A DNA stretch of 64,000 nucleotides from assembly GCA_002269645.1 (NCBI GenBank), contig NIVC01000059.1, positions 310,001 to 374,000 on the forward strand, written 5' to 3'. The notes beneath the pieces are model-generated. The model was not told the origin of the DNA. It saw only the letters and a program-made list of their open reading frames with translations, and did no database searches. Position numbers and translations under genes: made by a program. Positions 10,755 to 63,798 of the stretch are shown piece after piece (the stretch's first letter is position 1; every line of letters starts with the position of its first letter). Source of the stretch: Macrostomum lignano (Eukaryota).

Positions 10755-13700
10755 TCAGAAAGCGGTCATTATGTCCGCCTCGTTGGGGCCATGTACCTCG
10801 GAATCCTTGAGTTCATTGCTACCAGCTGCTGAGCAACCCTCGGATGCGCTGGGCCTCTGTCGCAATTTCGCTGCGAGCCTTTGGCTAATGTAGATGAGCA
10901 GCTCGACCACCTCGCAGACAGTCAGAATCGAGACGCCTGACCAGAGACCCAAGGCGCCTGTAGATTGAAAAAAATCGTTTACGATTCTAAGTGGGAATTC
11001 GATTGTCTACGTCTCTACGTAGCAAACAATTCGAATTAAATTTTTGCGATCGATACCGAAGTGAAATCATAGTGTATAGGTCACTCTGAAGTAGCTTTTA
11101 CAACCCCTAGGAACTGGCCTGTACTGGACTCTATAGGTGCAAGTTTTGTTTTAGTTCTCCCGACTTGCTTCCGCTTTGAGATCGCATTGGACTGAAACTC
11201 AACGCTGCAAAAGCTTTGGGAAAATTTTCAGAAACTTTTTGACGAAGTTTCGGTGCATTTTATTGCTTTTAATTTTTACCACACCGTGATCTGATTCGAA
11301 ACGCATGCTCGTAAAATATGAACGATTTCCTCCTATGTCTGCAACGAGATTCTTGGTAGGGTAGGCCTCCTCTTCGGTGATCTCCTGACCTTCGGAGGTC
11401 CACGCCTGAACTGTCAGTCTGGCCAGGCGGTTCTGCAGCGACTCGAGCTCTTTTTCGAAGCCCAGAATGTCCTTGGCGCTCTGATTGGCAAAAGGCACCC
11501 CGGTGAGGCTAAGTGACTTCAAGTACGCTTGGTAGAAATTGGCTACACCTCTAAGACCGCTAACGCTGGTCCGGTAGCCGTAGTTGCTTGCAAGCTTCTG
11601 CAATAGCAGAGTGGATCTGGCAGTCTTCAAGTTAGGCCACGGATAAGTGACGTAACGGACACTGTAGCCGTCTGTCCGACACGGAGACTGACAGCGCTTC
11701 ATCGCCTCAAACTCGTACTGGTTTATCCGCGATACCTGCTCATTGTACCGTATCTCAAGATCGATAGACAAGTTGCCGATGTCCTTGGCGTCGAAACAGT
11801 AGCTGTACTGGTCGAATAAGTCCACCTTGACTGGCAGAATCGACGGTAAACAGTTGCAGTTTTCGATGAACTGCTGTACAATGTACGAATTGATGCAATC
11901 CTCTCTACCGGAGACGTTGAACTGTCGCTCAGTGGCAGTCAGAACGCTGGATAAACGTTAAGTTATGACCAGTGAAATATCATGCACTTTTATCTGTTCT
12001 ACGCTCGTACCTTCGATGCTAGCTAAAGCTCACGCAATTATTTCTCAAGCACTGACCTTGAACTGTTCGGCAGTAGCAGCATCGCCCGGAGTCTACTGAT
12101 CATCTCAGACCAATTCCCAGAGTGGACGACCAACTCTGCAGCTTCCTCCATTCTGAAGAATGTTTAATTCAGTTTAAAGGAGCCATTGAAACCTTCTGCT
12201 TTAATTTGCCGTAGGCAATTTTCAAGAAAATTTAATGTCACTGAAGAAAGTTACCCACTTTAGGTCTTCGTTTGACATGGATTTCTTCCATGACGGCAGT
12301 CGATATACAATTGGCTCGGTGGTCTCTAGGCACGGCCTCGATGCAGTTGAGAGTCTGGAGTATCTTTCAAACCTGAGCTGCACGTCCATGCGTTGGGAGG
12401 CGGCCACGTCGATGCCCTTGGACGACCAGGGGAACGAATCTTCCGGAACAATGATCGCCTAGGAGTGGAAGGTTGTGGTAATAGTTTTGGATTTACGTGG
12501 GGTTTCTGCACTAGACTTCTTATTTTACAATCATTTGAGACATTTGACAATTTCATTTGAATTTTTAAAAATGTTTCGCATTTTGGCACAAAATAAAAGA
12601 AACATGCTTTCTAAGTCTTTCCAAGGTAGGTTCAGTCAAGTCTGCATTGACTTTCTGGATGTAACTTTTTTGTTACCTCAGGGTTAGCTTAGCTCTCGCT
12701 TTTGAGTTTGTAGTGTACAGTTTTGTGTGTTTTTGTCTTTGACTTCAGTCATTTTTATGATTCGGTGCAAAAATTTTTAATGACTACACCTCGATCAACT
12801 TTCCTTGTGTGCCTTTACTGATTCGCAAATGATATCTCATTGTGCACTTTCACATCCGGATTGTGATTCCTCTATCAAAAACACACCGCTTACCTTGAAA
12901 GCCAGGTCGCTGATCTCCAAGCTCATACCGTTATGAAACGCACTGGTCATTTCGGGCATGTCCTCGACTGTTTTCCCTTTAGAGTCTGTGGAGTCGGTGA
13001 AGTACGTTATTGACAGCTGACTCCCTGCTAGCTGGGTGCTCGACATGTTGGCGATGAAGCTCTGCTTGAGAAACTGGTGGCACATTCCCAGCTGCGGATG
13101 GTCGATATTGACGAAGTGCTCCTTGGTGCATTTCTGGCCAGCGAAGGTGCAGTCGGCCAGGCCGATGCTGAGGTCGTTGCTGAACTGCCTGGCGAGCAGG
13201 TGGCTGCCGACCGAGTCAGTGAAGACGCCTCTGACGCTGGTTTCAGCAGCTGAAATTTTTGTGCCGACAGGCAATGCGTGAAGCTCAGAATTTATAGTTT
13301 TAACAACTTTTAGGCTCCGACTTACAACAAGTAGGAATTGTGCAGCGTTCGAATGCCATCTCAAAAAACTGAGTTTGAAAAATTGGTACCGACATTGTGT
13401 GCAGCAGAGATGGATCGGCAAAGCAGACGGGAGAATTGGAGATTAACACTGGGTGCCGTCTGAAAGTGATGTTAAAAATGAGATGCAGTCGTTCTACAGC
13501 TGCTTGCAAAAAATGAGGCTAGTGAAACTCACGTGAAGGTGCCGTTCTCAGTTTCCGCTAGGTCAATAACTATGCTCACTGGACGACAAAAGTTGTCGCT
13601 GGTGTTCCCAATACGGTCGGGGGTTTGAATCTTTAGTCGCAGCAGTTTTTCAACAAAGCGAACACCTGAAATGCAATATTTATCAACTATAGTTCGGCGC

Positions 13701-16614
13701 ATTGGGTTCACTTCACGTGCATGTTGATTTAAAAACATCCATTCAGACGAATGAAAAGTTGCTGTTTTAAGATAGTGGGTGTGTGCTTTCTTGCTAATAA
13801 GATCGTAGCTAGATAGTCTTACTCCATCCACTCCCTAGGTGTGAAACTAAAACGGATACCAAAAATAGCACCAGCAAATCACTTGAACAATCGGCCTTCA
13901 AAATGTTTCTTTCCCTAGTTCGTTAGTGCCATTTTTGGTTTGCTAGTTTCCAACCGAGTACAAAAAATTGAAGAAATTGTTTTCCCTAGCAGAGATTAGA
14001 AAGTTCAGAAACGTACAAACCTTTATTGAGTTTCATCTTCATCTGCACGTTCTCCACGCTACTCCAAGGCAAACAGTCCCGGCCCGACTCTGTCCAGTTC
14101 GTCCGACCAGTGTACACCACATTCGCTCCGGCATTTTTGCTCACGGCGCAGTCGAACTCTTTAGTAGCGGCTGTAATGTGCTGCGTTAGTTTGTTAGATA
14201 AATCGCAACAGGCCACCCGCAGAGAATCGCCTAAGCTACCGAAGTTTCTTTCACCAGCCCTAAATTGATGTCTCAGTGAACGGAATGAATACTAGCTTCT
14301 TCGACTGCTTTGGCTGTAATCAACACCATTGACTCACCGCAGTAAGGGACGTCGCACAAGCCAGCGTTTAGTCTTTCAGAGTCCATGAAGAAGCAGTAGG
14401 GTCCGCCTGAATAAGCTTCCAATTGACCAAACCTTCCAATATGCATTGGTTTGTCTTCTAAAAGAAGTCACGGATTAAAGCTGATGGAGAAACTAATTAG
14501 CTTTATTAATTAGAGTATATTCAGCACACAAACCAACATCCCGGATGATCATAACAGCAGCGGTCCTGTCTGATCCGCATGGCTCCGTTTTGCTGTTGCC
14601 GCACTGCCTGTCGCAGCTGGTCCAGCTCCCGTCGGCCAGAGTGGCAGCGGCCTCGGAGCTGCCGCAGAGGCAGTCGCCGCGGTTCAGCAGCGCTGCAAAC
14701 GGAGCGTTGAACTTGTCGCAGCACTGGGCGCACGGCTCAAAGGCCTCCAGGCCTCCGCTGTAGCACGTGATGTTGAAAGCCGTGTCCGCTGTCACTGGGA
14801 AGCAGCCAATTATTTCCCGTCTGGGTCCTGTGTGAGCGCATGGAGTGCGTCAGTTCAAGAGTGAGAGAGTCAGTCAGTCAGTCAGTCAGTCAGTCAGTCA
14901 GTCAGTCAGTCAGTCAGTCAGTCAGTCAGTCAGTCAGCCAGTCAGTCAGTCAGTCAGTCAGTCAGTCAGTCAGTCAGTCAGCCAGTCAGTCAGTCAGTCA
15001 GTCAGTCAGTCAGTCAGTCAGTCAGTCAGTCAGTCAGCCAGTCAGTCAGCCAGTCAGTCAGTCAGTCAGTCAGTCAGTCAGTCAGTCAGTCAGTCAGTCA
15101 GTCAGTCAGTCAGTCAGTCAGTCAGTCAGTCAGTCAGTCAGTCAGTCAGTCAGTCAGTCAGTCAGTCAGTCAGTCAGTCAGTCAGTCAGTCAGTCAGTCA
15201 GTCAGTCAGTCAGTCAGTCAGTCAGTCAGTCAGTCAGTCAGTCAGTCAGTCAGTCAGTCAGTCAGTCAGTCAGTCAGTCAGTCAGTCAGTCAGTCAGTCA
15301 GTCAGTCAGTCAGTCAGTCAGTCAGTCAGTCAGTCAGTCAGTCAGTCAGTCAGTCAGTCACTCACTCACTCATTCACTCGCTAAGTCAGTCACTTACGAG
15401 TTGCAATTGGGAGAAACTCTGTCAGCGGCAAACCCGGAGGTAAGCGGCACCTGGACTCAGTCTCTGAGAAGTTGAGTTTCATCAGCAAGCCACCCAGTAC
15501 TTCAGCATTCGAGCTCCCTCTCTGCAGCATGCGTGCTGCATCATTCCATCGCATGCACTGCTTGTAGATCACGTAGGGCTGTACAGGTGGCTTAACCGAA
15601 TAGTTTCCAAGTGTTTTTGAATCGGAAGGATCAATCGTAATACTAGATGGCCCATAGACAACTGCATAGCTTGCGTTTCCAAGGTAGTTACTTCCGTCGA
15701 GACTTCTCCTACAGTCGGAGCTTTTATTTTTTGCTGCAAAAAATTGTTTTGACTCGCATTTTTGCGGGAAAATCTATTTTCACGCATTTATAATGCTGGA
15801 AATACATCGCTTAAAATTAATTTCAAGAATTTATAGTCACTGCTGAGTTCGTCTCGTAGAAAAGCAGCTGTAAGTACGAGTTATTCAATGTATAAACCGA
15901 CTTTTAGTCTCAGTACTGTAGCTTCTACCGGGGTTATGGGGATCTTTAGATGCTTACAGTCTTGCAGGTGCCAAGTGGATATCTAAGCTTAGTCGTGGAG
16001 GTGTCAGGTCGATCTCTAAAGCTAAGTAAATCTCGAAGGACCCGAGGTGAAGCTTAACTACACAAATTCGCAGGTTGTAGAAGGAAGCAAACATAAATTT
16101 AGAACTTTCAAGGCAGCTTACACTTTACTAGCAGTTTCAGTTGGCTCATCACGGCTGATTCAGTTTGCTCCAATGCAATCAAAAACGCTTGCGTCGGCTT
16201 GTTAAAAAAAATAGTTTCCGATTTAGACAAATCAAAGTCGTAAAGTTTGATTTTTTCGCTTGTGTTACTCTTAGAGCCGAGCTCTACATTGTAAATATCC
16301 GATGTCGACAGCATCGGAACAATTCTACTCATGGTGACGGCGTGAGTCGGGCAGATGTACACATCCGGGAACTGGTACGGCAGAGTGGACACCGTTATTG
16401 TTGTTAACACCGGAGCCTGCTGGTACCTGTCGAACAGGGTGTACAGGTGGTAGCCGAACCCGCTGTAGGTAGCCAGCAGAAAAGTGAGCCATAGTGACCT
16501 GCCGATGAAGCTGGACTGCTCAGAGAATCTGCCCAGTCCGTGAGCACTTGTGTAGCTGCAGAACTGCTTGACAGGTGAGCTCAGCTCATGCTGGTCAGCG
16601 GGTTCGCTGCTCAT
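10755..16614 (-). CDS. DEG/ENaC (FaNaC-like) channel subunit with kringle[WSC]-kringle ectodomain insert, copy A (~1035 aa; final splice donor anomalous)
   Basis: Exons 16614-16122, 15733-15398, 14827-14534, 14457-14338, 14230-14021, 13665-13580, 13518-13326, 13249-12894, 12458-12259, 11946-11330, 10957-10755 (3108 nt). Motifs: FCSYTSAHG, TM1, FPDVYICP, GMCHQF, thumb CNC, LVADIGG-ALGLWSGVSILTVCE TM2. Confidence 0.88.
14868..15362. repeat. (CAGT)n microsatellite in channel A intron 2
   Basis: ~120 tandem units. It explains the SQSV ORFs. Confidence 0.98.
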
Positions 16615-19127
16615 CGCTGGGGTTCGTCTGGGATGCAGCTAAAATGGAAGCTAGTATTATCTTTCTGTCTATATAGCCTATTTGCTGAGCTGCTGAGCTC
16701 CCTATATAGCCTATGGCTGCCAACTTTGTGTTCTCTCCCGTTAGGTGTAGCAGGCTCCCCAGTAAGTCAGCAATGGATTTGGTCCAGCCAGTGGCTGCAA
16801 AGTTATTTAATTATTTATTTTTATTCCGCAAAATATTTTAGCTAATTAGCCACATCAATAGTCATCAATCAAGTCATTATATATCGACTATTTCAAGCCG
16901 GATCAGTGAGTAGTTGACTAATAAAATCTACTGACTTTGAAGTTGTCCGGCGGGGGGGGGCTTTTGATACTACAGCAGATCAGAGTGACTAATAGACCCG
17001 CAGTCAGCTAAAACCCAAGCTGTCATGCATGCCATTACATGACCCTGAGACCGCTCAAGCATACGGATGCATACACAGCGGCCCTGTCTTTCTTCTTTGC
17101 ACGAAAATTGCTAGAAAAAGTGGCAATAACCATAACATGCAATCACTCTTACTGCAGCAACGGGATCGCAAGCCAAATGTCGTATAAGGCTTAACTACAT
17201 TGAACTACATTGAGTCGTAGGATGAAAAGTCGAGGGCGATTCTCTGCGGGTAGGGGGGGGGGAGTTGAGGAGGCGATTCTCTGCGGGTAGGGGGGTCGAT
17301 GGTGATTCTTTCGGTGGGGTTTCACTTGGACAGGTACTGACAAGTGTCACAGCAGGCAGTTGTTGTGCACCCGGCTTACTTTCTCACCGTCGGAAATTTG
17401 CTACACGTAAAAGTTCTACGTCACCTATACTGGCTGAATGCATGTCAAGGACTTCTAATCTAAAGCTTTCTAATTTGTCTATGGCAAAACCTCATTCAGC
17501 GCAATGCATTTAAAAGAAAAGAAGACAGTTGCATTTGAAACAACACAACAGTATTTTGATCGTTTTCGCTCTTCAGTACTTTAGCTTTTTGCAGTTCATT
17601 TGGGTTTACGCGCATTTATTGCAACTTAATCTAAGATGATTGTTACACAATTGCAATGTCGAAAAGCGTGCATTAAATCCTATAGTCTATGGTGACTCCC
17701 CATCTCACGCCAACCAAAAAGCAGAGGACCAAAGGAGAGGACCAAAAAGTCCTCTGCTGCACGCAGTGTGAAGTCTATCGTCATTGATGGTCCTAAAATT
17801 AAAATCCTGATTAAGTAAGTACGTGCAGACTTTTTTGAAGCATGGAAGCTATTGAGAAGAAGCATGAGTTATGCGTTATTCGTTTTCTGTTTTTCTCGTT
17901 TTCTATCAAATACACATTAATTGTTTATTAGTCTATGGTACACCCGGTCTTTCCCGAAACCATTAAATCATTTAATGGGCTCCGTTTGAAGACCATTGTA
18001 ATTATACTTTTACCCAGACGCAATGAAAAAATATTTTGGCCATTATTCCACAGTTTTGATGTGTACCATAGACATTTGGATTGAAAAAATCCATCGCTCA
18101 GTATTTTTGTTAATAAATACAGAACAACAAGAAGTAAATGAACAAAAAGGAAAAATAATTAAAACTAAAGTACCAGCTACACGAAAAGAGTTAATAATAA
18201 ATGTCACAGCTAGTGCAGTTCATCAGTTTGTAGTCGAATTTGACAATGTAAAAATCAATTTGTCACCCAAAGTGAAACATGCACAGTTCTCAAAGCCGCA
18301 GTTTCCAAAGATGCTCGACACTTTAACCTGATGATTTGGCACTGCAAAAGGAGTTGGTCTATGTTGAATGTTTTCTATGAAAGAGAAATACAGGTGCTCA
18401 AGTATAGTTGCCGAACTTACCATTTGAAAGATGCACATCTTGGTTAAGTTGGCATGCGACTGATGAGCTTCGTCTGATGAGCTTCTTTGGTACCGCAGTA
18501 TCCAAGCTGGGATTCTTTGGGACTGTCGGCTGCTCGACTGAATCGATTGGCCGCTTTCAGGCATCGTTTATAGCCGTCGAGGCGTTGAAGACTGCATGGT
18601 CGCGTTTTCTTCCTAGGTAGCGCCGCACGGTTCGTTCAGTCGTCGACAGGAAGATTTTTTCAATTAATAAGCGCGGCTGTTTGACGAGATGCACTATAGC
18701 CATAGTTGTTTGACAAGACAAATAACTTTTTCTCCACACTACTCGCTTTCCTGATTTCTTGCAAGAAGCAAGCAAATCAGCACTCATCACAGTGTTGTCT
18801 ATGGTCAAACTAAGCCACACAACTCAGTCGTCTATGGGTAAAACAACTCTTAAAACAGCCAATTGAAGCATGATAAAAAGTATGGAATAATGACCGCGAC
18901 AAAAGTGTGGAGTAATGGCCGCAAAAGTGTGGAACAATGACTGCGCGCTGAGTGAAAGTATAGATACAATGCACTTGTATAGTATGCAACTTCGTTGAAT
19001 AATGGCCATAGACACTCGTGCGCTACGATACTATACAATACTACCATTAAATGATTTATTGGTCCCGGTATAGAAGTATTTGTACCATAGACTATTGATT
19101 CCTTGCTGCGAGGGCGCCCATTAAAGG

Positions 19128-20517
19128 TCAATAAAATAAGCAATTGGATTTTATATGATAAAAGCGTGCATTAAATGTATAATCATTTGTTAACCATGTC
19201 GTAGTATTTCGCAGAAACATTAGATAGCGCTCTACCGTTCGTGTGCTTTTTTTGCCGGTGATCTTGCAAATGTCAGCATTTAAGAAGCTATCATCGGCGA
19301 GTTCTTTCACAACTGTTGGACGCACGCAGTGGGCGGTGTACCGACGACTAAGTCCAGCAGCTTGTGAAATGGTCGACATGAGACTCGCCAAGGTGTTGAC
19401 ACCGACAGGCTGTTTAGCACAGTACCAATTAGACGTTTTCCAGTTGGAAACTTTTGGCTTCAAAAAGAAAGGCGTGCCTGGAGCAGCACCAGAGCTGCTG
19501 CTAGAAATCGACTCGCTTTGCTTACGTAGATACATTTTTAGTGCCTCGACTGGGCACTTTTCTGCGATTGAGACCATCACCGCGTTCTTGTAGTCATCGC
19601 ACGCTTCTCGGTTGAGGCTGTTGCCTACATTCTTAACTTTGCCAAGCCTAAGCTGCACAACCTCCGCTCCGTCGGGCCTCTTCTCAAAGATAAAGCTGTT
19701 CTCACTGAGTCAGCGAAGCCACTCGCGTCCCCGATTTCCAAAGTAATAGATGCAGTTGTAATAAACTTCGTGCAACAACGCCGTCGGATTTTCTCTGCTG
19801 AAGTAAGCGGCCAGTTTGCGCAAATCGTCCTCCTCCAGGTCTTCAAAATGTTTAGATCTGCCACCTGCACTGATGAAACTACGAGCCAGTGCTTTCAAGG
19901 TCGCATTGGCATTAGAGAACTCTCTGTCGGAAATGATATTCATTCGCCTGGTCTTCATCAGATGTCGGTACAATGCCGCTCGCATACAAATCAGAGTAGA
20001 CGATGCCGGAAGGTTGCCGTCACGCTTCCTGAAGGTTCCATAGAACAACCGTAGTGCAGATGCAATGGCCTCAGCGGAATTGGTTTGCAGATCGACACGG
20101 GCCTAAAAAGTTACGACGTTCAAAAGCAATACAAGAATTGACGAAAAGACCTATAGAAAATCTGAATTCAAAGCATGTAGAATACAAAGATTAACTGAAA
20201 CCACAGGATATCTGATTTCGAAGCAACTAACCTCGGGATGTTCATCCATGAACGTGTTCAGCTTTTTTTACATAACATTCGGCTTGCTGTCTGCTACTGG
20301 CGTTCTCTGCTGAGCGTTCCAACTCGGAAATCGCAGCCTCCAGCCTGTTTAAATCAGGCTCGGTGCTCATCAGCTCCTCCAGCATGGCGTCATCGATATC
20401 TTCGGGCAAAGCATAGTTGGTGTCCAGCGGTCCATTATCAAGCTCCTCCTGCGTCCGATCGCGAGCATGTTGTTCGAGTGTTTTATCCGACTCGACAGAG
20501 GACGGGCCGCTAACCAT
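19128..20517 (-). pseudogene. Crypton-type tyrosine recombinase (DUF3504-like), disrupted
   Basis: FYGTFRKRDG...GNRGRE...CPVEALKMYL...PVGVNTL...YTAHCVR...TGKKS...ERY matches the YR catalytic layout. Intron at 20231-20103. Lesions: in-frame TGA at 19712-19710 and a +1 frameshift in an A7 run near 20265. The usual TGH is TGK. Confidence 0.85.
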
Positions 20518-20550
20518 CTCGTTGGGAAATCTAAGTATTGAATCCTATAT

Positions 20551-21349
20551 TTGCCAATGTAACGGAGCTTTTGTCTATGGCAGCAAGGCTGGCAGAGTGG
20601 CATTTAATTTGGCAGAGATCGCCTTCTACGGGGTGTCAATCGCCAAGGCAAGTTGTTCGAGAGCCTCTGATCCAAATGCTACTCGATGCAGTTGAAATGA
20701 ATCCTTTGTTGACGTTGTAGAAGTGCAGCAGAAGTTGAAGGAACAGTTCCAGTTGGTCATCAGATTTCGACTCCTCAGCAGAGCTCTGGAAAAGCGACTG
20801 AAAATTGTTGGTAGAGACGCTGACATTCCAACGGTACGCAACAACCCACAGACGCTTGAGAGGGGGCAAGAATTTGCCGAATGGCTCACAGGCGTTTGGA
20901 TCATAGATCTTATATTCCCTAGATAAGCCACTTTGTATGGCGGTAATAGGGAAAGTGCGACCGCTGTTTTTCGTCACTTGTGCCAAAAATGACATGCATG
21001 GGTTGCTTAAATTTTGAGTTCAGTAGCTTAGGGACATAGACGCAATTTTTTGAGAATGTGATAAAACTTTTGATGAATTAAATAAAGAGCTACTTAATCA
21101 AATTAGGAATGGTGCATGCACTGCAGATACTACTGACGAATTTGAGTTCAGTAGTTGATTTTCGCGCTGTCGCGAGATGCAAATTTTTTTACATTAGCTT
21201 CTATGGCCACATAAGCGGCTAATGAGTGGCCCATCTTGTGTATATATGATCTTTGGTTTAGTTTAGACCAAATTGGTGCTTGTTGGACCAAATTAGATGC
21301 CGATGTGCCAGCCTTGCTACCGTAGACAAAAGCTCCATTACATTGGCAA
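20551..21349. repeat. ~62-bp imperfect inverted repeats (20551-20612 / 21288-21349) bounding an ~800-bp segment
   Basis: TTGCCAATGTAACGGAGCTTTTGTCTATGGCAGCAAGGCTGGCA pairs with TGCCAGCCTTGCTACCGTAGACAAAAGCTCCATTACATTGGCAA; no TSD seen. Confidence 0.8.
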
Positions 21350-21409
21350 CGGGCTGCAAAAGCTATTATTTTTCTAACTTTTTATAGACAAACTTGTATA
21401 AATTGTAAG

Positions 21410-22100
21410 TGGAAGGCAGCGAAAACCAGTCTCTATAAAAAAAGTTTACTATGCTCTTAGCTTTGAGTTGGTATCATGAGTTCAGGAATTTTGAACGATC
21501 TAAAATGAATTTGAGCTGGTGAAGTATCAAGCTTGTACCCCCACGTTTTCAGCTTTTGGAAGCGCCTCAATTTTATTAATTGGCTAAAAGTTGCAGCAAA
21601 ACTCAGCCAAAGAGCTCTCTTGCCAGTTCATATTACTGATTTCCCTGAATCCATCCATGAAGGATCCGGATTTAATCGGACGACCAGCACCGGACAAATG
21701 GCGTTTTCTATCTTTCTACACTTTGCTATGCTGTACACTCGGTGTAGTATTTGCAGCAATACTGAAAAAGGGCGGCACAAAAGTGCAGAAGCGCATGCAC
21801 GTCGTCATCGTTCGATGTGAAGGCTATGAAATTTCAGGGACTACTAAAGCTTTTAAAGCTCAATTTGGAATGGAAACCAAACCGCCAAGGGCGGGATATC
21901 GCAATTTCCCGCTGGCATAGAGATCGGCATAAAACGTAAAAGTATAAAACCTGAAAACGTCACTTACTCTGTTAAATCAATGTCTTTTTATGATTGGCTT
22001 TCAATCCAGTAAAGTTCTAGTAGGACTTGCCTGTTACCCTTCCTGCCAAACGTAGGATATTCGATTCACGATGTCCTGAAAGGGCAGGGCGGAGGAAAAT
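21410..22100. repeat. Diverged dispersed repeat of unknown class; inverted homolog at ~33600-33040 continuing at ~31260-31190
   Basis: Colinear matching blocks, e.g. TGGCTTTCAATCCAGTAAAGTTCTAG vs the reverse complement of ~33045-33070, and CTTTCTACACTTTGCTATG. Confidence 0.7.
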
Positions 22101-22502
22101 TTCTATCTAAAAAATGTCTGAAATGAACGCGCGCAAAGCAAAGTGTACAGAGCCCATGCTGCTTCCGCACTGCACACCAAGTCCGATGACAGCAAAATTA
22201 GATTTCAAAAACACCATCACCAAAGCGAGTTAAATGTCTGCCTGCTGGCATATTGATGCAGCTCAGAAAAAAATCCATCTACCGATCATTCACCATCCAC
22301 CGTTTCACTGACGGGGAATCCGCAAACAGATGCTCCGCCAACGATCGGATCAGACTGCATGCACTTTTACACGGCTTTTTGCTGGCCAATAACTGGCTGG
22401 CTGGCTGATCAGCAAACGCATAAATGCAGCAGTGCCTCAATTGAAATGCTTCCAATGCTTCAAATCCTGCTCAGCATCAGATAGTCACCAACCAGCCCAA
22501 CG

Positions 22503-25500
22503 ATGAGCAGCGAACCCACTGACCAGCATGAGCTGAGCTCACCTGTCAAGCAGTTCTGCAGCTACACAAGTGCTCACGGACTGGGCAGATTCTCTGAGCA
22601 GTCCAGCTTCATCGGCAGGTCACTATGGCTCACTTTTCTGTTGGCTACCTACAGCGGGTTCGGCTACCACCTGTACACCCTGTTCGACAGGTACCAGCAG
22701 GCTCCAGTGTTACAAACGATAACGGTGTTCACTCTGCCGTATCAGTTCCCGGATGTGTACATCTGCCCGACTCACGCCGTCACCATGAGTAGAATTGTTC
22801 CAATGCTGTCGACATCGGATATTTACAATGTAGAGCTCGGCTCTAAGAGTAACACAAGCGAAAAAATCAAACTTTACGACTTTGATTTGTCTAAATCGGA
22901 AACTCTTTTTTTTAACAAGCCGACGCAGGCGTTTCTGTTTGCATTGGAGCAAACTGAATCAGCCGTGATGAGCCAACTGAAACTGCTAGTAAAGTGTAAG
23001 CTGCCTTGAAGGTTCTAAATTTATGTTTGCTTCCTTCTACAACCTGCGAACTTGTGTAGTTAAGCTTCACCTCGGGTCCTTCGAGATTTACTTAGCTTTA
23101 GAGATCGACCTGACACCTCCACGACTAAGCTTAGATATCCACTTGGCACCTGCAAGACTGTAAGCATCTAAAGACCCCCATAACCCCGGTAGAAGCTACA
23201 GTACTGAGACTAGAAGTCGGTTTATACATTGAATAACTCGTACTTACAGCTGCTTTTCTACGAGAGCGAACTCAGCAGTGACTATAAATTCTTGAAATTT
23301 ATTTTAAGCGATGTATTTCCAGCATTATAAATGCGTGAAAATATATTTTCCCGCAAAAATGCGAGTCAAAACAATTTTTTGCAGCAAAAAATAAAAGCTC
23401 CGACTGTAGGAGAAGTCTCGACGGAAGTAACTACCTTGGAAACGCAAGCTATGCAGTTGTCTATGGGCCATCTAGTATTACGATTGATCCTTCCGATTCA
23501 AAAACACTTGGAAACTATTCGATTAAGCCACCTGTACAGCCCTACGTGATCTACAAGCAGTGCATGCGATGGAATGATGCAGCACGCATGCTGCAGAGAG
23601 GAAGCTCGAATGCTGAAGTACTGGGTGGCTTGCTGATGAAACTCAACTTCTCAGAGACTGAGTCCAGGTGCCGCTCACCTCCGGGTTTGCCGCTGACAGA
23701 GTTTCTCCCAATTGCAACTCGTAAGTGACTGACTTAGCGAGTGAGTGACTGACTGACTGACGGACGGACTGACTGACTGACTGACTGACTGACTGACTGA
23801 CTGACTGACTGACTGACTGACTGAATGACTGACTGACTGACTGACTGACTGACTGACTGACTGACTGACTGACTGACTGACTGACTGACTGACTGACTGA
23901 CTGACTGACTGACTGACTGACTGACTGACTGACTGACTGACTGACTGACTGACTGACTGACTGACTGACTGACTGACTGACTGACTGACTGACTGACTGA
24001 CTGACTGACTGACTGACTGACTGACTGACTGACTGACTGACTGACTGACTAACTGACTGACTGACTGACTGACTGACTGACTGACTGACTGACTGACTGA
24101 CTGACTGACTGACTGACTGACTGACTGACTCTCTCACTCTTGAACTGACGCACTCCATGCGCTCACACAGGTCCCAGACGGGAAATAATTGGCTGCTTCC
24201 CAGTGACAGCGGACACGCTGAATGCTTTCAACATCACGTGCTACAGCGGAGGCCTGGAGGCCTTTGAGCCGTGCGCCCAGTGCTGCGACAAGTTCAACGC
24301 TCCGTTTGCAGCGCTGCTGAACCGCGGCGACTGCCTCTGCGGCAGCTCCGAGGCCGCTGCCACTCTGGCCGACGGGAGCTGGACCAGCTGCGACAGGCAG
24401 TGCGGCAACAGCAAAACGGAGCCATGCGGATCAGACAGGACCGCTGCTGTTATGATCATCCGGGATGTTGGTCTGTGTGCTGAATATACTCTAATTAATT
24501 AAGCTAATAATTTCTCCATCAGCTCTAATCCGTGACTTCTTTTAGAAGACAAACCAATGCATATTGGAAGGTTTGGTCAATTGGAAGCTTATTCAGGCGG
24601 ACCCTACTGCTTCTTCATGGCCTCTGAAAGACTAAACGCTGGCTTTTGCGACGTCCCTTACTGCAGTGAGTCAATGGTGTTGATTATACAGCCAAAGCAG
24701 TCGAAGAAGCTAGTATTCATTCCGTTCACTGAGACATCAATTTGGGGCTGGTGAAAGAAACTTCGGTAGCTTAGGCGATTCTCTGCGGGTGGCCTGTTGC
24801 GAACTATCTAACAAACTAACGCAGCACATTACAGCCGCTACTAAAGAGTTCGACTGCGCCGTGAGCAACAATGCCGGAGCGAATGTGGTGTACACTGGTC
24901 GGACGAACTGGACAGAGTCGGGCCGGGACTGTTTGCCTTGGAGTAGCGTGGAGAACGTGCAGATGAAGATGAAACTCAACCAAGGTTCGTGTGTTTCTGA
25001 ACTTTCTAATCTCTGCTAGGGAAAACAATTTCTTCAATTTTTTGTACTCGGTTGGAAACTAGCAAATCAAAAATGGCACTAACGAACTAGGGAAAGAAGC
25101 ATTTTGAAGGCCGATTGTTCAAGTGATTTGCTGGTGCTATTTTTGGTATCCGTTTTAGTTTCACACATAGGGAGTAAGACTATCTAGCTACGATCTTATT
25201 ATTGGGCTGTTAGGAAAGTTCTGTCCGTTTTGAGTAAAATAGGTTGGAGCGAGTTTTTATAGGAACGCAGCAGTGTTACTCAGTAAAATAATTGCCATCG
25301 CAATCGATGACCCTCTGCTAACGAGAGGGCAGACTTTGGAAGCCAGCTCTGTAGAAATCCTTGGGCTGTGATTCAAAAAAGTTAGTAATGCAGTCTTTGA
25401 CCCCTTTGTCATCTTCAAACGTTTTCTCTTTCAGATGATGGTGCAGCGCTCGAAAAAGATGGTAGTCTGTAGGGGCCAGATCGGGGCTGTAAGGTGGGTG

Positions 25501-28500
25501 GGGCAGCCCTTCCCAGCCCAGATCCAGCAGCTTTTGTCGGGTCAAATTGGCGGTGTGCGGCCGAGCGTTGTCATGAAGGAAGCGAACATGCTGACGCCCT
25601 GGACGCTGTGTGCGGAGGCAGTCGGCCACATTCTGCAGCTGGTTACAGTAGAGCTCGGCGGTGATGCTGGTGTTGGGCGGCAGCAGCTCGAAGTATACAA
25701 CTCCTTCACTGTCCCACCAACAGCAGAGCATCACCTTCTTAGGGTGCAGTGGGGCCTTTGGCTCTGGCTGTGGCGGCTTGCTGGCATCGACCCACTGGCG
25801 CTTGCGGTGTATATTAACGTACATCACCCACTTCTCATCACCAGTGAGTATTGAGGCCAGCCAGTCTGTTGTTCTCTTGTAGAAGAGCAGTGAGGTGCAA
25901 ATGTCTGCTCGGCTTTGACGGTCCCTGTCAGTCAGGTCATGGGGGGTCCACTGTCCGAGCTTGCTTTTCTTGCCCATGGCAGCCAGGTGTTCAGCGACTT
26001 GCACATGGGAGCACCCGAGAGTGGCTGCCAGCTCTCATGTAGTCTGGTGCGGATTGGCCTCCACAAGTGTCCGCAGCAGCTCAGTGTCTATCTCAGATGG
26101 GCGTCCAGGGCGAGGTTCGTCAGCAAGGCTGTAGTCGCCGCTGCGAAAGCGATCAAACCAACGACGGGCTGTGCGGTCAGAGACAGCATCCTGGCCAAAT
26201 GCACTGCACAGGCGTCGAGTCGATTCGGCTGCTGTAATACCTGCTAGAAAATCATATAGCATGCACTGCCTTAGAGCGATGCTGTTTAATTCAAAATTTC
26301 TGGCCATAATTGGGCGCTGAAAAGCAAATGACTTGGTTAGAATGACCACAACTCTGGCTGTATATGCATAACACAAGTATTGGATCCAACACAGCTTCAT
26401 GATCCTCTGCATAGAAAAATAAAAAAACGGACAGAACTTTCCTAACAGCACACACCCACTATCTTAAAACAGCAACTTTTCATTCGTCTGAATGGATGTT
26501 TTTAAATCAACATGCACGTGAAGTGAACCCAATGCGCCAATGCGCCGAACTATAGTTGATAAATATTGCATTTCAGGTGTTCGCTTTGTTGAAAAACTGC
26601 TGCGACTAAAGATTCAAACCCCCGACCGTATTGGGAACACCAGCGACAACTTTTGTCGTCCAGTGAGCATAGTCATTGACCTAGCGGAAACTGAGAACGG
26701 CACCTTCACGTGAGTTTCAGTAGCCTCATTTTTTGCAAGCAGCTGTAGAACGACTGCATCTCATTTTTAACATCACTTTCAGACGGCACCCAGTGTTAAT
26801 CTCCAATTCTCCCGTCTGCTTTGCCGATCCATCTCTGCTGCACACAATGTCGGTACCAATTTTTCAAACTCAGTTTTTTGAGATGGCATTCGAACGCTGC
26901 ACAATTCCTACTTGTTGTAAGTCGGAGCCTAAAAGTTGTTAAAACTATAAATTCTGAGCTTCACGCATTGCCTGTCGGCACAAAAATTCCAGCTGCTGAA
27001 ACCAGCGTCAGAGGCGTCTTCACTGACTCGGTCGGCAGCCACCTGCTCGCCAGGCAATTCAGCAACGACCTCAGCATCGGCCTGGCCGACTGCACCTTCG
27101 CTGGCCAGAAATGCACCAAGGAGCACTTCGTCAATATCGACCATCCGCAGCTGGGAATGTGCCACCAGTTTCTCAAGCAGAGCTTCATCGCCAACATGTC
27201 GAGCACCCAGCTAGCAGGGAGTCAGCTGTCAATAACGTACTTCACCGACTCCACAGACTCTAAAGGGAAAACAGTCGAGGGCATGCCCGAAATGACCAGT
27301 GCGTTTCATAACGGTATGAGCTTGGAGATCAGCGACCTGGCGTTCAAGGTAAGCGGTTTGTTTTTGATAGAGGAATCACAATCCGGATGTGAAAGTGCAC
27401 AATGAGATATCACTAGCGAATCAGTAAAGGCACACAAGGAAAGTTGCTCGAGGTGTAGTCATTAAAAATTTTTGCACCGAATCATAAAAATGACTGAAGT
27501 CAAAGACAAAAACACGCAAAACTGTACACTACAAACTCACAAGCGAGAGCAGATAACCCTAAGGCACAGATATTATATAGTATCTGTGCCCTGAGGTAAC
27601 AAAAAAGTTACATCCAGAAAGTCAATGCAGACTTGACTGAACCTACCTTGGAAAGACTTAGAAAGCATGTTTCTTTTATTTTGTGCCAAAATGCGAAACA
27701 TTTTTAAAAATTCAAATGAAATTGTCAAATGTCTCAAATGATTGTAAAATAAGAAGTCTAGTGCAGAAACCCCACGTAAATCCAAAACTATTACCACAAC
27801 CTTCCACTCCTAGGCGATCATTGTTCCGGAAGATTCGTTCCCCTGGTCGTCCAAGGGCATCGACGTGGCCGCCTCCCAACGCATGGACGTGCAGCTCAGG
27901 TTTGAAAGATACTCCAGACTCTCAACTGCATCGAGGCCGTGCCTAGAGACCACCGAGCCAATTGTATATCGACTGCCGTCATGGAAGAAATCCATGTCAA
28001 ACGAAGACCTAAAGTGGGTAACTTTCTTCAGTGAAATCAAATTTTCTTGAAAATTGCCTACGGCAAATTAAAGCAGAAGGTTTCAATGGCTCCTTTAAAC
28101 TGAATTAAACATTCATCAGAATGAAGGAAGCTGCAGAGTTGGTCGTCCACTCTGGGAATTGGTCTGAGATGATCAGAAGACTCCGGGCGATGCTGCTACT
28201 GCCGAACAGTTCAAGGTCAGTGCTTGAGAAATAATTGCGTGGAGCTTTAGCTAGCATCGAAGGTACGAGCGTAGAACAGATAAAAGTGCATGATATTCCA
28301 CTGGTCATAACTTAACGTTTATCCAGCGTTCTGACTGCCACTGAGCGACAGTTCAACGTCTCCGGTAGAGAGGATTGCATCAACTCGTACATTGTACAGC
28401 AGTTCATCGAAAACTGCAACTGTTTACCATCGATTCTGCCAGTCAAGGTGGACTTATTCGACCAGTACAGCTACTGTTTCGACGCCAAGGACATCGGCAA

Positions 28501-29361
28501 CTTGTCTATCGATCTTGAGACACGGTACAATGAGCAGGTATCGCGGATAAACCAGTACGAGTTTGAGGCGATGAAGCGCTGCCAGTCTCCGTGTCGCACA
28601 GACGGCTACAGTGTCCATTACGTCACTTATCCGTGGCCGAACCTGAAGACTGCCAGATCCACTCTGCTATTGCAGAAGCTTGCAAGCAACTACGGCTACC
28701 CAACCATCATTAGCGGACTTAGAGGTGTAGCCAATTTCTATCAAGCGTACTTGAAGTCACTTAGCCTCGCCGGGGTGCCTTTTGCCAATCAGAGCGCCAA
28801 GGACATTCTGAGCTTCGAAAAGGAGCTCGAGTCGCTGCAGAACCGCCTGGCCAGACTGACAGTTCAGGCGTGGACCTCCAGCAGTCAGGAGATCACCGAA
28901 GAGGAGGCCTACCCTACCAAGAATCTGGTTGCGGACATCGGAGGTAAATACTTGCGTACAATGTAGTCATTGAGCAGTTGATGTTTAAGTATAAGGCTTT
29001 GCTTGCGTGAATATGGGGACAGTTAAGTGCGGAGGATACTACTAGTGTGCATCGAGAATTTGCCAGTTTGTGAAAGGAATTTTCCTTTGAAGCCTTAACA
29101 CAGAGTAATTTAACTACGGCGTGGCTGGATTTGTAAATATTCACTGTTTGCACTGCACCATCAGGCGCCCTCGGCCTCTGGTCTGGCATCTCAATCCTAA
29201 CTCTGTGCGAGCTGCTCGAGCTGCTCATCTACATCAGCCGCGGGCTGGCCCGCAGACCTCAGCAGAATCCGAGTCGAGAGCGACAACAAACAGCAGCTGG
29301 TGGAGTCAGCCAGTTGGACCCAGAAGCAGTCGGCCTGGAGTCTGGCAAGATTGCGCTCTGA
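22503..29361 (+). CDS. DEG/ENaC (FaNaC-like) channel subunit with kringle[WSC]-kringle ectodomain insert, copy B (1035 aa)
   Basis: Exons 22503-22995, 23385-23720, 24171-24470, 24546-24665, 24775-24984, 26577-26662, 26724-26916, 26993-27348, 27814-28013, 28327-28943, 29165-29361. All GT-AG and in frame (3108 nt). TM2 LVADIGGALGLWSGISILTLCELLELLIY. Confidence 0.9.
23746..24130. repeat. (GACT)n microsatellite in channel B intron 2
   Basis: Inverted counterpart of 14868-15362, about 25 units shorter. Confidence 0.98.
25202..26449 (-). mobile_element. Mariner (DD34D) element, inactive, in channel B intron 5
   Basis: TA then TTGGGCTGTTAGGAAAGTTCTGTCCGTTTT; the inverse TIR at ~26424-26449 lacks its outer 4 bp. 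CDS 26307-25276 has WTPHDL, TGDEKW, HDNARPH, YSPDLAPTD and two nonsense codons (26037-26035, 25320-25318). Absent from copy A. Confidence 0.93.
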
Positions 29362-31397: not shown

Positions 31398-33040
31398 CAA
31401 CAACACAACAACAAAAACAACAAAGTACGCTGTCAGGTGACTTTGTACGTAGTGTACAAAGTCAGCGTCAGAGCCTGGGCGCGAACAAAGGCCGCACCAC
31501 TGGCAGAGTCCGGGGCGCCAGCGTGGGTCGGCAGGCAGTCGACGAAACGTCGAGTTCGGGCCTGGTCGCGCCGGTAGGGTGCCTGCAGCGTTAGCAGCAG
31601 CACCTCCTGCACCGGCTGCGGGCAGTAGGACTCGGCGCGGATGATGTGGCCTGCCAGCTGGAGTCGCCGAAGTCGCAGCAGTTAACTTGGACGGGCCAGG
31701 CCGGCGCGGCGATAGAGTGCCGCATTGGTGATCCGCTCGTCGCTGATCTTAAAGGCGGCACGCAGCAGGCCAGCGTGCGCCGCGTTGACTTGCTGTTCGA
31801 GCGAATTTGTCAGCGTCCAGGTCTCGGTGTTGTACAACAGGACGGTCTCGCCTGGAACAGCGCCGCCCTCTGGCGGTCAGGTAGGGCCTCGGACTGCAGG
31901 ACCGCCCTCACAGAGCGAAAGGCAGCCCAAGCGAGCCCGCGGCGACGCCGCAGATCTTCGCGGACGTCAGGTACCAGACCGCCGAGGTAGACGAACTGCT
32001 GACAGCGCGGAAGCTCCGTTACCTGCCCGCCAGCGCCTCGGCAGAAAATTGCGGCCTCGATGTCACCCGGCACGCAGAGCACAACGGTCTTCTTCGTGTT
32101 GACCACCAGGCCGACGCTCGCTGCAGCGCTAACTAGCTTGTCCAGCTGGCGCTGGGCGCCCTCTACGGTCGAGGACAGCAGGGCGAGGTCATCGGCGTAG
32201 CCAAACACGCTGAGCCGTTTCTCCGGTTGACGTCGACCCACGCGTCGCCGCAGTAGGAAGCCGTCTTCGTCGGTATGAATAGCAGTTCGTAGCACCCAGT
32301 CAAGCACCAGGACGAACAGGAACGGCGCTAGAGTGTCCCCCTGGAGCACCCCGGAGAATGTCTCGAAGGAGTCCGACAGGCCGTCCGGCGTCATCACAGC
32401 TGCTCTCGTAGCACAGTACAACGCCATAATGGCGGAGATCAGCTGTTCTGGTACATGATACGCTCGGAGCAGGGATCGCAGCCCTCGCAACCGAGTCGAA
32501 TGCCTTCATGAAGTCAATGAAGACAACAATCAGGTCCAACTGGCGCGTGCGCGCCTCCTCGATGATTCGGCGGAGAGCTAGGATCTGCGCCACTATGCCA
32601 CGGTGGGGCTAAAACCCGTTCTGCTCAGGTCGCAGGTAGGGATCCAGCACCGGTTGCAACCGTGATAGCAGCATCCGGTTGAACGACAGCACAGCACAGG
32701 ATTGCAGGCAGATGCCTCGGTGCTCGCGTCTAGTCGTGTAGTGCCCGGCTTCTTTGGAATGGCGATGATGTGCACCATGGTCCACTCGGTGGGTGCCATT
32801 TCACCTAAGAGCACGCGGTTCATCACACGGGCGACCTCACTGGCCACACAGTGGATGCGCAGCGCCTCGATGGGCACCTCGTCCAGACCCAGCGCCTTGC
32901 CGCCCGGCGTCTTCTGGGCAAGAATTACAACTTCAGCCATGGTGACTGGTGCAACGTTAAAACTGTCCTCAGACGGCAACGGCGTCTCTGGCGGCAGCGT
33001 CAGGATGTTGGGCAAGGATGTTGGGTACACATTCAGGTTC
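31398..33040 (-). mobile_element. 5'-truncated, frameshifted non-LTR retrotransposon (RTE-like reverse transcriptase)
   Basis: IAIPKKP, QILALRRIIE, FIDFMKAFDSV, GVLQGDTLAPFLF, GYADD and FVYLGG are spread over several frames; a (TTG)-rich tract lies at ~31398-31420. Confidence 0.92.
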
Positions 33041-33847
33041 TTCTAGAACTTTGCTAGACTGAAAGCCAACTAGAAACAGCACCATGGTAGATCGTAGCAA
33101 AACAAGGCCGGCTCATTGTTTAGACGTTTTCAGATTCTTTATTTGCATGTTTTACTCCAAAGTCATGCCGAAATTGCGATGTCTCGCCCCTTAATGGTTT
33201 TATTTCCGGTCCAGGGAAGCTTTAGTAGTCCCTAAAATTTCCTAACCCTCATAGACGGATGTTACATTCGGTCCTGCACTTTTGTGCCGCTCAGTTCCGT
33301 ATAGCTGCAAATTCTACACCGGGAGTGCATAACATAGCAAAGTGTAGAAAGATGAAAATGGCCATTTGTCTGGAGCTGGTTGCCCAATTAAAGCCGGAAG
33401 AACTGCATGAATCCAGGGAAATCAGTAATTAGGACTGCAACAGAGCCTTTTGGCTAAATTTTGCTGCAGCTTTAGGCCAGAATTGGGGCGCTTTCTGGAG
33501 TTCAAAACGTTACAAGCTTAAAGCTTCACCAGCAGGAAATTTACGAGTATGTTAGATCGTTTAAAAGCAAAGCATGGTCAGAGGCCGGTTTTCGCTACCA
33601 AATTCAGTAGCGAGACAAAAAGCTTTCAGATTTTAGCACCAAACTAGCAATCTAGTTATTCCCTTTGGGGCGGCCAATAAGCAAGGGAAGAAGATTATTC
33701 ACGTAAATTTCATTCGCCTTGACATCTCAGCATTTCCCCCAGTAAGCCTTGACATCTCAACAATTCCCTCAATAAGCCTTGAAATATCAGCATCCTTAAA
33801 TGGCAAGCATCCCTGGACATCCCTGAATTAGTATTAACTAATAGCAA

Positions 33848-34023
<176 letters not shown>

Positions 34024-34335
34024 CTTTGTTTGTTTGTTTGCTTTTGTCTGTGGGGCTGTCTGTGAGGGCTGTCTGTCGGGGACTCTGTCTGTGAGGGATG
34101 TGAGTGAGGGATGTGAGTGAGGGGTCTGATAGGATAGGAAAATACGAAATCAAAGCAGGCGACTGTCCTGGTTATACCTGCAGTTAGAGTTGGTGCCATC
34201 TACGATTTTATTGAAAATGAATATTATCGCATGGTTGCTTGCTAATTAAAATATTGTAAAATAATTTTTAACTTTTATAGATAAATAGCTCATATAATAC
34301 TCGTATGTCACTGGATCCACCAGCTGCAGAGCAGC

Positions 34336-37974: not shown

Positions 37975-38886
<912 letters not shown>

Positions 38887-39974: not shown

Positions 39975-53511
<13,537 letters not shown>

Positions 53512-57310: not shown

Positions 57311-57734
57311 TCAGACATGCAATAATCACAGGTCAGACTAGAACCCTTGAGAAAAGGCTGCCGCTCTATTGCGCAATTTTGAGTCAATTACAAAAGCACG
57401 CATGCGCATTTTTAGCTACACACTAGCAATCTTCGCCCCCCGTTGGGGGACATCTGGATAGAATCTCTGTTCTCTACAAGTAACAAAAAGACAGCCAAAT
57501 AAAGCCTTCACAAAGACGACAGACAAACTGCTCTAATAAAGTGTAATGCAAAAAGAAATCATCCCAAGACAGCAAGCATCCCCCAGATTGCAAGCATCCC
57601 CCAGATAGCAAGCATCCCGAAAAAGTAAGCATCCACCATAAAATAAGTAGCTAGTGCTACAATTTCCTTAGCTCTATAGTGGCTCCTTTAAAATTGGCAT
57701 GACGCTTAATTTTACGTTTGAAATTGTGTAAATT

Positions 57735-63700: not shown

Positions 63701-63745
63701 TTTAATGTTTGACATTGTGGCTCTTGTGTGTTTGACATAGCGCTT
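57735..63745. repeat. 23-bp satellite (ATGTTTGACATGGTGGCTCTTTA), ~6 kb, with higher-order block duplications
   Basis: Direct. Blocks 60353-61895 and 61921-63857 are tandem duplicates that include unique flank. Confidence 0.97.
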
Positions 63746-63798
63746 CTTTTATGTTTAGCAGTTTTTTGTTTTTAAGGTGTTTTAATAAAAAATCATTT

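Follow-up and report, generated by a model that had tools for sequence, protein, structure and literature searches.

The inverted Amy and hsp70 pairs of Drosophila are cases of paralogs that evolve in concert. Concerted evolution of adjacent paralogs is also documented in Caenorhabditis elegans for the inverted hsp16-1/hsp16-48 modules, for hsp70-7/-8 and for col-12/col-13, with precedents in which conversion between adjacent inverted paralogs takes in the introns and leaves the flanks diverged (PMC3966223). Here we describe a locus of this kind in a stretch of 64,000 nt from Macrostomum lignano (assembly GCA_002269645.1, contig NIVC01000059.1, positions 310,001 to 374,000 of the forward strand; hereafter the window, with positions counted from its first letter), in which two channel genes of the DEG/ENaC family, a left gene (L) and a right gene (R), stand head to head within an inverted repeat. 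Their sequences indicate that the pair is very probably an old inverted duplication whose gene bodies have been homogenised by recurrent non-allelic interlocus gene conversion.

As in the C. elegans inverted pairs, L and R are neighbours (head-to-head arrangements occur among the nematode cases too), gene and introns are near-identical whereas the flanks are wholly diverged, and conversion rather than recent duplication appears to account for the high identity. Unlike those pairs, the L/R block is long (about 5.2 kb, with 11 exons and 10 introns), it omits the exon that encodes the pore helix and the tail, so that the products differ C-terminally, and a third copy places its breakpoint inside exon 11. 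The fog-2/ftr-1 pair resembles L/R in that conversion acts in the shared part and a distinct C-terminal exon outside the block can preserve a functional difference; however, the 3' end of fog-2 is unrelated, having been recruited after a partial duplication, and the two genes are in tandem with a KS of about 28% (PMC3966223), whereas L and R are inverted genes with old, homologous tails, and their bodies are only about 2-4% different at silent sites.

The primate sex-chromosome palindromes (P1-P8 of the Y chromosome and those of the X) also share with the L/R locus inverted arms, a unique spacer and arm-to-arm conversion, and in both settings intrachromatid non-allelic homologous recombination (NAHR) is expected to invert the spacer (PMC3723533, PMC8327919). 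Their arms are longer than 8-10 kb with more than 99% identity, as against 5.3 kb and 98% in the L/R pair. Large palindromes of the sex-chromosome type are defined by an arm length of 8-10 kb or more, an identity above 99% and genes that lie within the arms, and the L/R pair is not one of them. Unlike in those palindromes, the L and R genes overrun both arm ends, so that an inversion would make promoter/tail chimeras.

Results

Two head-to-head channel genes in an inverted repeat

A repeat search and blastn recovered the inverted repeat where an earlier reading of the same DNA (the original prediction) had put it. The head-to-head channel palindrome described there was confirmed in its coordinates as two divergently transcribed channel genes on arms 98% identical; its limits, 10755 and 29361, are exactly the stop codons of the two genes, and its spacer of 5.9 kb measured 5874 nt. 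Gene models were built by tblastn with M. lignano proteins as guides, requiring GT-AG sites and frame continuity, and the locus is organised as follows (ORF, open reading frame).

11325-16621, minus strand: inverted repeat, left arm; starts 7 nt ahead of the ATG and reaches about 5 nt beyond exon 11
16622-22495, no strand: spacer, unique, 5874 nt, containing both 5' flanks
22496-28949, plus strand: inverted repeat, right arm; starts 7 nt ahead of the ATG and reaches about 5 nt beyond exon 11
10755-16614, minus strand: left gene L, a DEG/ENaC channel gene of 12 exons whose ORF of 1026 aa is intact (tblastn-guided model, lifted over via the arm alignment)
L exons, minus strand: 16614-16122, 15733-15398, 14827-14534, 14406-14338, 14170-14021, 13665-13533, 13459-13326, 13249-12894, 12458-12259, 12152-12057, 11946-11330, 10957-10755
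22503-29361, plus strand: right gene R, a DEG/ENaC channel gene of 12 exons whose ORF of 1026 aa is intact (tblastn-guided model)
R exons, plus strand: 22503-22995, 23385-23720, 24171-24470, 24597-24665, 24835-24984, 26577-26709, 26783-26916, 26993-27348, 27814-28013, 28120-28215, 28327-28943, 29165-29361

The last exon is exon 12 in these models, where the original prediction had counted exon 11. The exon 9/10 junction was set at 28013/28120 in preference to 28017/28127, on account of its better splice sites and its agreement with the N-termini of two predicted M. lignano proteins, P0011 and P0012.

The left arm is 5.3 kb and the right arm 6.5 kb, the difference of 1.16 kb being due chiefly to the insertion of a mariner element. 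In a global alignment every 200-column bin within the arms was 97-100% identical, with an abrupt drop to the random level outside them. The two genes become homologous 7 nt before the ATG (R 22503, L 16614) and cease to be so about 5 nt beyond the penultimate exon, which ends at R 28943 and L 11330. Their 5' flanks cannot be aligned, nor can their last introns or their 3' flanks. The spacer shows no internal palindromic homology and its two ends have no detectable homology to each other; beyond the last exons and in the spacer no palindromic homology remains except a 78-nt stretch encoding the second transmembrane helix (TM2). No further paralogs of the channel gene were found in the window outside the two arms. 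The locus of the paralog P0008 (L001, NIVC01000649.1) holds a single gene with no inverted partner and, judged against it, the palindromic arrangement is specific to the L/R pair.

Channels of the DEG/ENaC family carry an N-terminal F-x-x-x-T-x-x-HG motif ahead of the first transmembrane helix (TM1) and a G-x-S tract in TM2. Exon 1 of the two genes encodes MSSEP..FCSYTSAHG followed by a hydrophobic TM1 helix, and the junction of exons 11 and 12 (slash) reads ..LVADIGG/ALGLWSG(I/V)SILT.., in agreement with a topology of two transmembrane helices. The Pfam ASC profile (PF00858) scored 145.7 bits against a cut-off of 23.6 (E=3e-42), which places the products in the family, whereas WSC reached 25.9 bits, just below its 27.8 cut-off, and a kringle-like stretch is weak. 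The nearest database proteins are all from M. lignano and are labelled amiloride-sensitive sodium channel or WSC-domain proteins, with PF00858 and PF01822; among those of the earlier M. lignano annotation, P0001 and P0011 are L-type and P0012 and P0007 R-type. Both genes are thus predicted to be DEG/ENaC channel genes with a WSC module in the ectodomain. They resemble the family in the F..T..HG motif followed by TM1, the cysteine-rich ectodomain and the pre-TM2 GG-x-x-GLW-x-G-x-S, and differ from its typical members in about 350 inserted ectodomain residues that comprise the WSC module and the kringle-like stretch. This architecture is common to several M. lignano paralogs, PF01822 being annotated in P0001, P0002, P0007 and P0010. 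The cysteine-rich WSC module lies at 24171-24984 in R (exons 3-5) and at 14827-14021 in L, and is an unusual insertion for a DEG/ENaC channel.

The arms are near-identical, introns included, but not uniformly so

With the tetranucleotide microsatellite of intron 2 excluded, the arms differ at 98 of 4754 aligned sites (2.06%). Exons account for 52 mismatches in 2875 sites (1.81%) and introns for 52 in 2280 (2.28%), which bears out the earlier description of arms near-identical with their introns; since introns are as similar as exons, constraint at the protein level cannot explain the identity of the arms. The products differ by 25-26 substitutions and a 2-aa indel over exons 1-11, with nine of the substitutions in exon 11 and a 6-nt indel in exon 3; the counts given previously for exon 1 (5 of 164 residues) and exon 8 (one residue) were correct. 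The arms are not, however, homogenised exactly, as had been proposed, because they differ by 2%, a mariner element is present in the right arm only and a microsatellite differs in length.

25206-26449, minus strand: mariner-like element of 1.24 kb, confined to intron 5 of R and bounded by perfect 26-bp terminal inverted repeats
14868-15392, no strand: (AGTC)131 microsatellite in intron 2 of L, beginning 5 nt after the exon-2 donor
23726-24130, no strand: (TGAC)101 microsatellite in intron 2 of R, homologous to the L array and 30 units shorter

The mariner-like element has a Mos1-type helix-turn-helix (HTH) and a Transposase_1 domain, its transposase being divided between two ORFs. With 3.2% mismatches against an arm-wide intron mean of 2.3%, intron 5 ranks among the more diverged ones. 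In L and R alike, a long pure tetranucleotide array stands only 5 nt past the exon-2 donor.

Synonymous (dS) and nonsynonymous (dN) divergence were estimated by the Nei-Gojobori method. Over exons 1-11, dS was 0.042 and dN 0.012; the dN/dS of 0.28 in the arms is significantly below 1 (P=1.2e-5), showing that the L/R pair has been under purifying selection. The silent divergence was unevenly spread, with dS values of 0.015 in exons 2-10, 0.067 in exon 1, 0.10 in exon 11 and 0.135 in the second half of exon 11. Beyond the arms, dS in the last exon rose to 0.60 over the 24 TM2 codons and to about 1.9 in the tail, where dN was 0.87; from arms to last exon, the change in synonymous divergence between adjacent segments was significant (Fisher P=0.006). 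Synonymous divergence in exon 11 (0.097) and exon 1 (0.064) exceeded the divergence of the arm introns (0.023; P=1.7e-5 and P=0.013, respectively), the outer 500 nt on each side were 3.8% diverged as compared with 1.6% in the middle (P=5e-5), and the longest identical run, 446 bp at 27588-28035, was longer than expected by permutation (P=0.006). Some mismatch clusters beside indels are alignment artefacts, which do not drive the tests of non-uniformity.

Silent divergence should be uniform after just one duplication or one replacement event, and the non-uniform pattern fits neither. Uniform divergence along the gene, which the original prediction had named beforehand, jointly with a single orientation in all reads, as evidence against itself, is not what was seen (chi-square across bins, P=6e-5). 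This mosaic of divergence, together with an identical tract longer than chance, is a signal of the GENECONV type.

The differences between the arms also bear on the quality of the assembly. Copies that are not adjacent in the genome, whether paralogs or homeologs, might have been falsely joined within the spacer in inverted orientation, as could happen in the neopolyploid, repeat-rich M. lignano genome, which is hard to assemble (PMC10733133), and in a window rich in satellites and transposon fragments where the adjacency of the two copies rests on one sequence. Nevertheless, the window does not contain any N, the 2% divergence, the mariner insertion, the microsatellite length and the flanks argue against a fold-back read, and L-type and R-type proteins are both present in an independent annotation. 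An artefact of this sort appears very unlikely, and the conclusion on gene conversion is independent of the orientation of the copies.

The last exons are homologous, old and outside the block

The gene segments beyond the arms are the following.

10755-10957, minus strand: last exon of L, TM2 ALGLWSGVSILTVCEVVELLIYIS and an L-specific C-tail ending in ..IMTAF and the stop
29165-29361, plus strand: last exon of R, TM2 ALGLWSGISILTLCELLELLIYIS and an R-specific C-tail ending in ..GKIAL and the stop; 63 of 64 residues match the predicted M. lignano protein P0003
10958-11329, minus strand: last intron of L, 372 nt, unalignable with the R intron and starting with GA (11329-11328), not GT
28944-29164, plus strand: last intron of R, 221 nt, with a canonical GTAAAT donor

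The clear divergence of the last exon noted in the original prediction was borne out by 31 identical residues in 56 and by dS values from 0.60 (TM2) to about 1.9 (tail), and only the 78-nt TM2 stretch could be aligned, at 83% identity, with 20 of 24 residues in common. The two last exons have nevertheless the same splice phase (phase 1, G/GC) behind unalignable introns of 372 and 221 nt. A homologous last exon of the same phase in both copies implies that two complete genes existed before the homogenisation.

These features bear on whether L and R might stem from an inverted duplication that was recent and took in only the segment between the ATG and exon 11, after which one copy recruited an unrelated promoter and last exon, as in fog-2/ftr-1. 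High identity of the reading frame with dissimilar flanks can arise in this way, according to a review of Caenorhabditis paralogs (PMC3966223), and the divergence of the arms is low, about 2%. It is significantly non-uniform, however, unlike that left by a single event; the last exons are homologous in TM2, of equal phase and at similar intron distances, and hence the tail was not recruited from an unrelated sequence; and the R tail is common to a third gene, represented by P0003. We consider such an origin highly improbable.

The two genes differ at the last donor, which reads GGAG/GTAAAT in R and GGAG/GAAATC in L, a change that resembles the loss of 1 nt relative to the R donor. The nearest in-phase GT available to L is at 11323-11322 (C/GTTCAT), 7 nt downstream, and is similar to other weak donors of the same gene, such as GTTCGT and GTTTGT; its use would insert two residues (NR) before TM2 and break the GG-x-x-GLW spacing that is otherwise invariant in all paralogs. 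No protein with an L-type tail was found in the database, so the existing annotation lends no support to the use of the L last exon; the L-type and the R-type partial proteins both end at ..LVADI. The last exon of L has kept an open frame and a conserved TM2, and L may use the shifted donor, be recently impaired or carry an assembly error at the donor base.

The C-terminal ends of the products are -KIAL in R (residues 1023-1026, 29350-29361) and -MTAF in L (10755-10769), which we take to resemble PDZ-ligand motifs of class II and class I, respectively. As pure speculation, such differing ends would fit different trafficking partners.

A third copy places the breakpoint within exon 11

To the L/R comparison P0003 was added as the one extra copy, at the protein level only. 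R shares 28 of the 29 exon-10 residues with L and 17 with P0003, and in exon 11 the values are 196 and 190 of 205, whereas in exon 12 the 63 of 64 residues that P0003 has in common with R compare with only 31 of 56 for L. Up to residue 905 the informative sites group R with L at 25 positions, R with P0003 at three and L with P0003 at two; the 35 sites at residue 918 and beyond all place R with P0003. Body and tail are thus phylogenetically incongruent, and the grouping switches in a narrow zone.

28772-28811 in R, plus strand, corresponding to 11501-11462 in L: zone where the informative-site grouping switches, within exon 11, about 135-170 nt before the donor

Because this switch lies inside exon 11, the most recent homogenisation stopped short of the last intron. 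The limits of similarity proposed earlier, from just before the ATG to the last intron, hold for the homology itself but not for the phylogenetic breakpoint at R 28772-28811. Over the last 135 nt or so of exon 11, L and R share about 93% identity, which has older causes, such as earlier exchange together with constraint.

Other M. lignano proteins show mixed patterns as well. P0002 is a mosaic relative to L/R, in which blocks of about 97-99% identity (residues 1-103 and 542-631) alternate with blocks of about 40-60%, and P0007, an R-type protein of another assembly, has L-type states at residues 71, 262 and 400; both patterns are suggestive of recurrent exchange within the channel family. M. 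lignano is a neopolyploid (PMC10733133), and P0002/P0003 may represent a homeolog that has kept the original R-type body. In this third family member (P0002/P0003) the tail, too, is among the blocks near-identical to L/R.

Discussion

Probable gene conversion between two old copies

The original prediction of an old duplication with gene conversion agrees with the dS contrast between bodies and last exons, with the homologous phase-1 last exons, with the non-uniform arms and with the incongruence introduced by P0003. A block of about 2% divergence, introns included, is bounded by a homologous last exon that is far more diverged, which is the signature sought for gene conversion. In the model that we propose, an old inverted duplication would have produced two full-length DEG/ENaC paralogs head to head, 5.9 kb apart, and repeated conversion between the inverted copies would then have overwritten the gene body of about 5.2 kb with all ten internal introns, keeping the bodies about 98% identical, with the interior homogenised most recently and the edges earlier. 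Conversion tracts need homology at their start and end, and the neutral 5' flank and the last intron have diverged beyond recognition. With no homology in the flanks, the homogenised block is anchored in exon 1 and exon 11, whose coding sequence is conserved. Its apparent extent "from the ATG to the last intron" follows from this, constrained coding sequence being the only place at either end where homology persists. The last exon, with the pore-lining TM2, the G-I/V-S filter position and the cytoplasmic tail, would remain outside the block together with the 5' flanks and so keep its copy-specific sequence. Exchange may still be ongoing, and selection, rather than a mere loss of homology, may protect the tails; occasional resolution by crossover would invert the spacer.

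Several points weigh against this interpretation. The comparison copies P0002, P0003 and P0007 are predicted proteins only, from an older, fragmented assembly, and some of their models are visibly imperfect; with three taxa only, the recombinant could formally be the P0003 gene and not R. The last conversion events may be old, given the 2% divergence and the lack of very long identical tracts. A signature of GC-biased conversion is absent, the converted introns having a GC content of 0.39, the last introns one of 0.39-0.40 and the spacer one of 0.43. Both the adjacency and the inversion of the two copies rest on a single assembly, and, since L lacks a canonical last donor, one partner of the pair may be decaying.

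The spacer and its possible inversion

The original prediction also held that a crossover between the arms would re-pair each promoter with the other pore/tail exon, and the geometry for this is in place, with the 5' flanks between the arms and the last exons outside them. Intrachromatid crossovers might recurrently invert the spacer, so that both orientations segregate in M. lignano, a process that is compatible with conversion. The positions of the promoters in the spacer and of the last exons outside the arms, and 5.3-kb arms that are 98% identical and only 5.9 kb apart, would favour such toggling, as would the frequent spacer inversions of the primate X palindromes, whose spacer orientation differs between species in about 50% of cases and is polymorphic at 18% in one human case (PMC8327919). 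At the human Y palindrome P6, however, crossover resolution is rare in comparison with conversion, with 3 inversions against 56 conversion events (PMC3723533). Moreover, a single orientation is present in the one assembly, the events would be germline polymorphisms and not a regulated switch, their functional effect would be small since the arms are nearly identical, and the L tail is perhaps poorly spliced owing to its GA donor. Recurrent inversion is therefore regarded as unlikely. Slightly more doubtful is the further proposal that both orientations segregate and that inversion swaps the regulatory region driving each TM2/C-tail variant, which would make the pair a heritable two-state channel-isoform locus, produced by NAHR and kept recombination-competent by conversion.

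A recombinase-like sequence is present in the middle of the spacer.

19128-20048, minus strand: Crypton-like tyrosine-recombinase (DUF3504) remnant, mid-spacer, with a DUF3504/phage-integrase-like module

An ORF of this class between inverted repeats recalls the FLP recombinase of the 2-micron plasmid and raises the question of a programmed invertible element in which the spacer recombinase catalyses inversion of the arms. When its stop is bridged the ORF scores 40.9 bits against a Pfam cut-off of 29.7. Nevertheless, an in-frame stop interrupts the catalytic domain between the box-I Arg (..NRGREWLR, then the stop) and the HxxR..Y motifs, there is no clear N-terminal part, and GKKS stands at the conserved His/Trp position. 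The relatives nearest to this ORF, members of a dispersed Crypton-like family, share no more than 57% identity with it, nothing ties it to the arms, and the paralog locus L001 has no such arrangement. No intact dedicated recombinase associated with the inverted repeats was found, this stop-interrupted ORF being the sole candidate in the spacer. It reads as a decayed transposon remnant and is not a credible dedicated invertase, and the chance that the locus is a programmed invertible element is practically negligible.

Repeats in the rest of the window

Mobile-element debris surrounds the locus, with a DDE_3/HTH transposase ORF at 1398-2492 (minus strand) and a reverse-transcriptase fragment at 31810-32490 (minus strand). 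A 270-nt repeat is shared at 78% between the spacer (21587-21852) and a site 4 kb past the right gene (33217-33473). Large satellite arrays with a strong skew in strand composition occupy the following positions.

57733-63756: 23-bp unit, 261 copies
46389-48749: 24-bp unit, about 98 copies
44319-45028: 31-bp unit, 23 copies
41763-42408: 34-bp unit, 19 copies

The 24-bp satellite array gives rise to the long, artefactual "ORFs" at 46394-49007. The window also holds very long tetranucleotide microsatellites, namely (AGAT)228 at 37975-38886, which is 100% pure, (GTCT)260 at 50503-51519 and (AGTT)48 at 33847-34038; these (AGAT)n, (GTCT)n and (AGTT)n arrays and the intronic (AGTC)n of the channel genes belong to one class.

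Significance of the L/R locus

As an instance of a known process the L/R locus is clean but ordinary, and it leaves the current understanding of the mechanisms involved unchanged. What it provides is a well-delimited animal case in which conversion very probably homogenises a 5-kb, 11-exon gene body while the regulatory flanks and the pore/tail exon escape, and it illustrates that apparently "exact" conversion boundaries can arise simply where homology survives only in constrained coding sequence. If the spacer did toggle, the locus would amount to a natural promoter-swap experiment for a DEG/ENaC channel. For the annotation of M. lignano, paralog ages taken from gene-body divergence will be badly underestimated, and transcript assemblies will break at the exon 11/12 junction.

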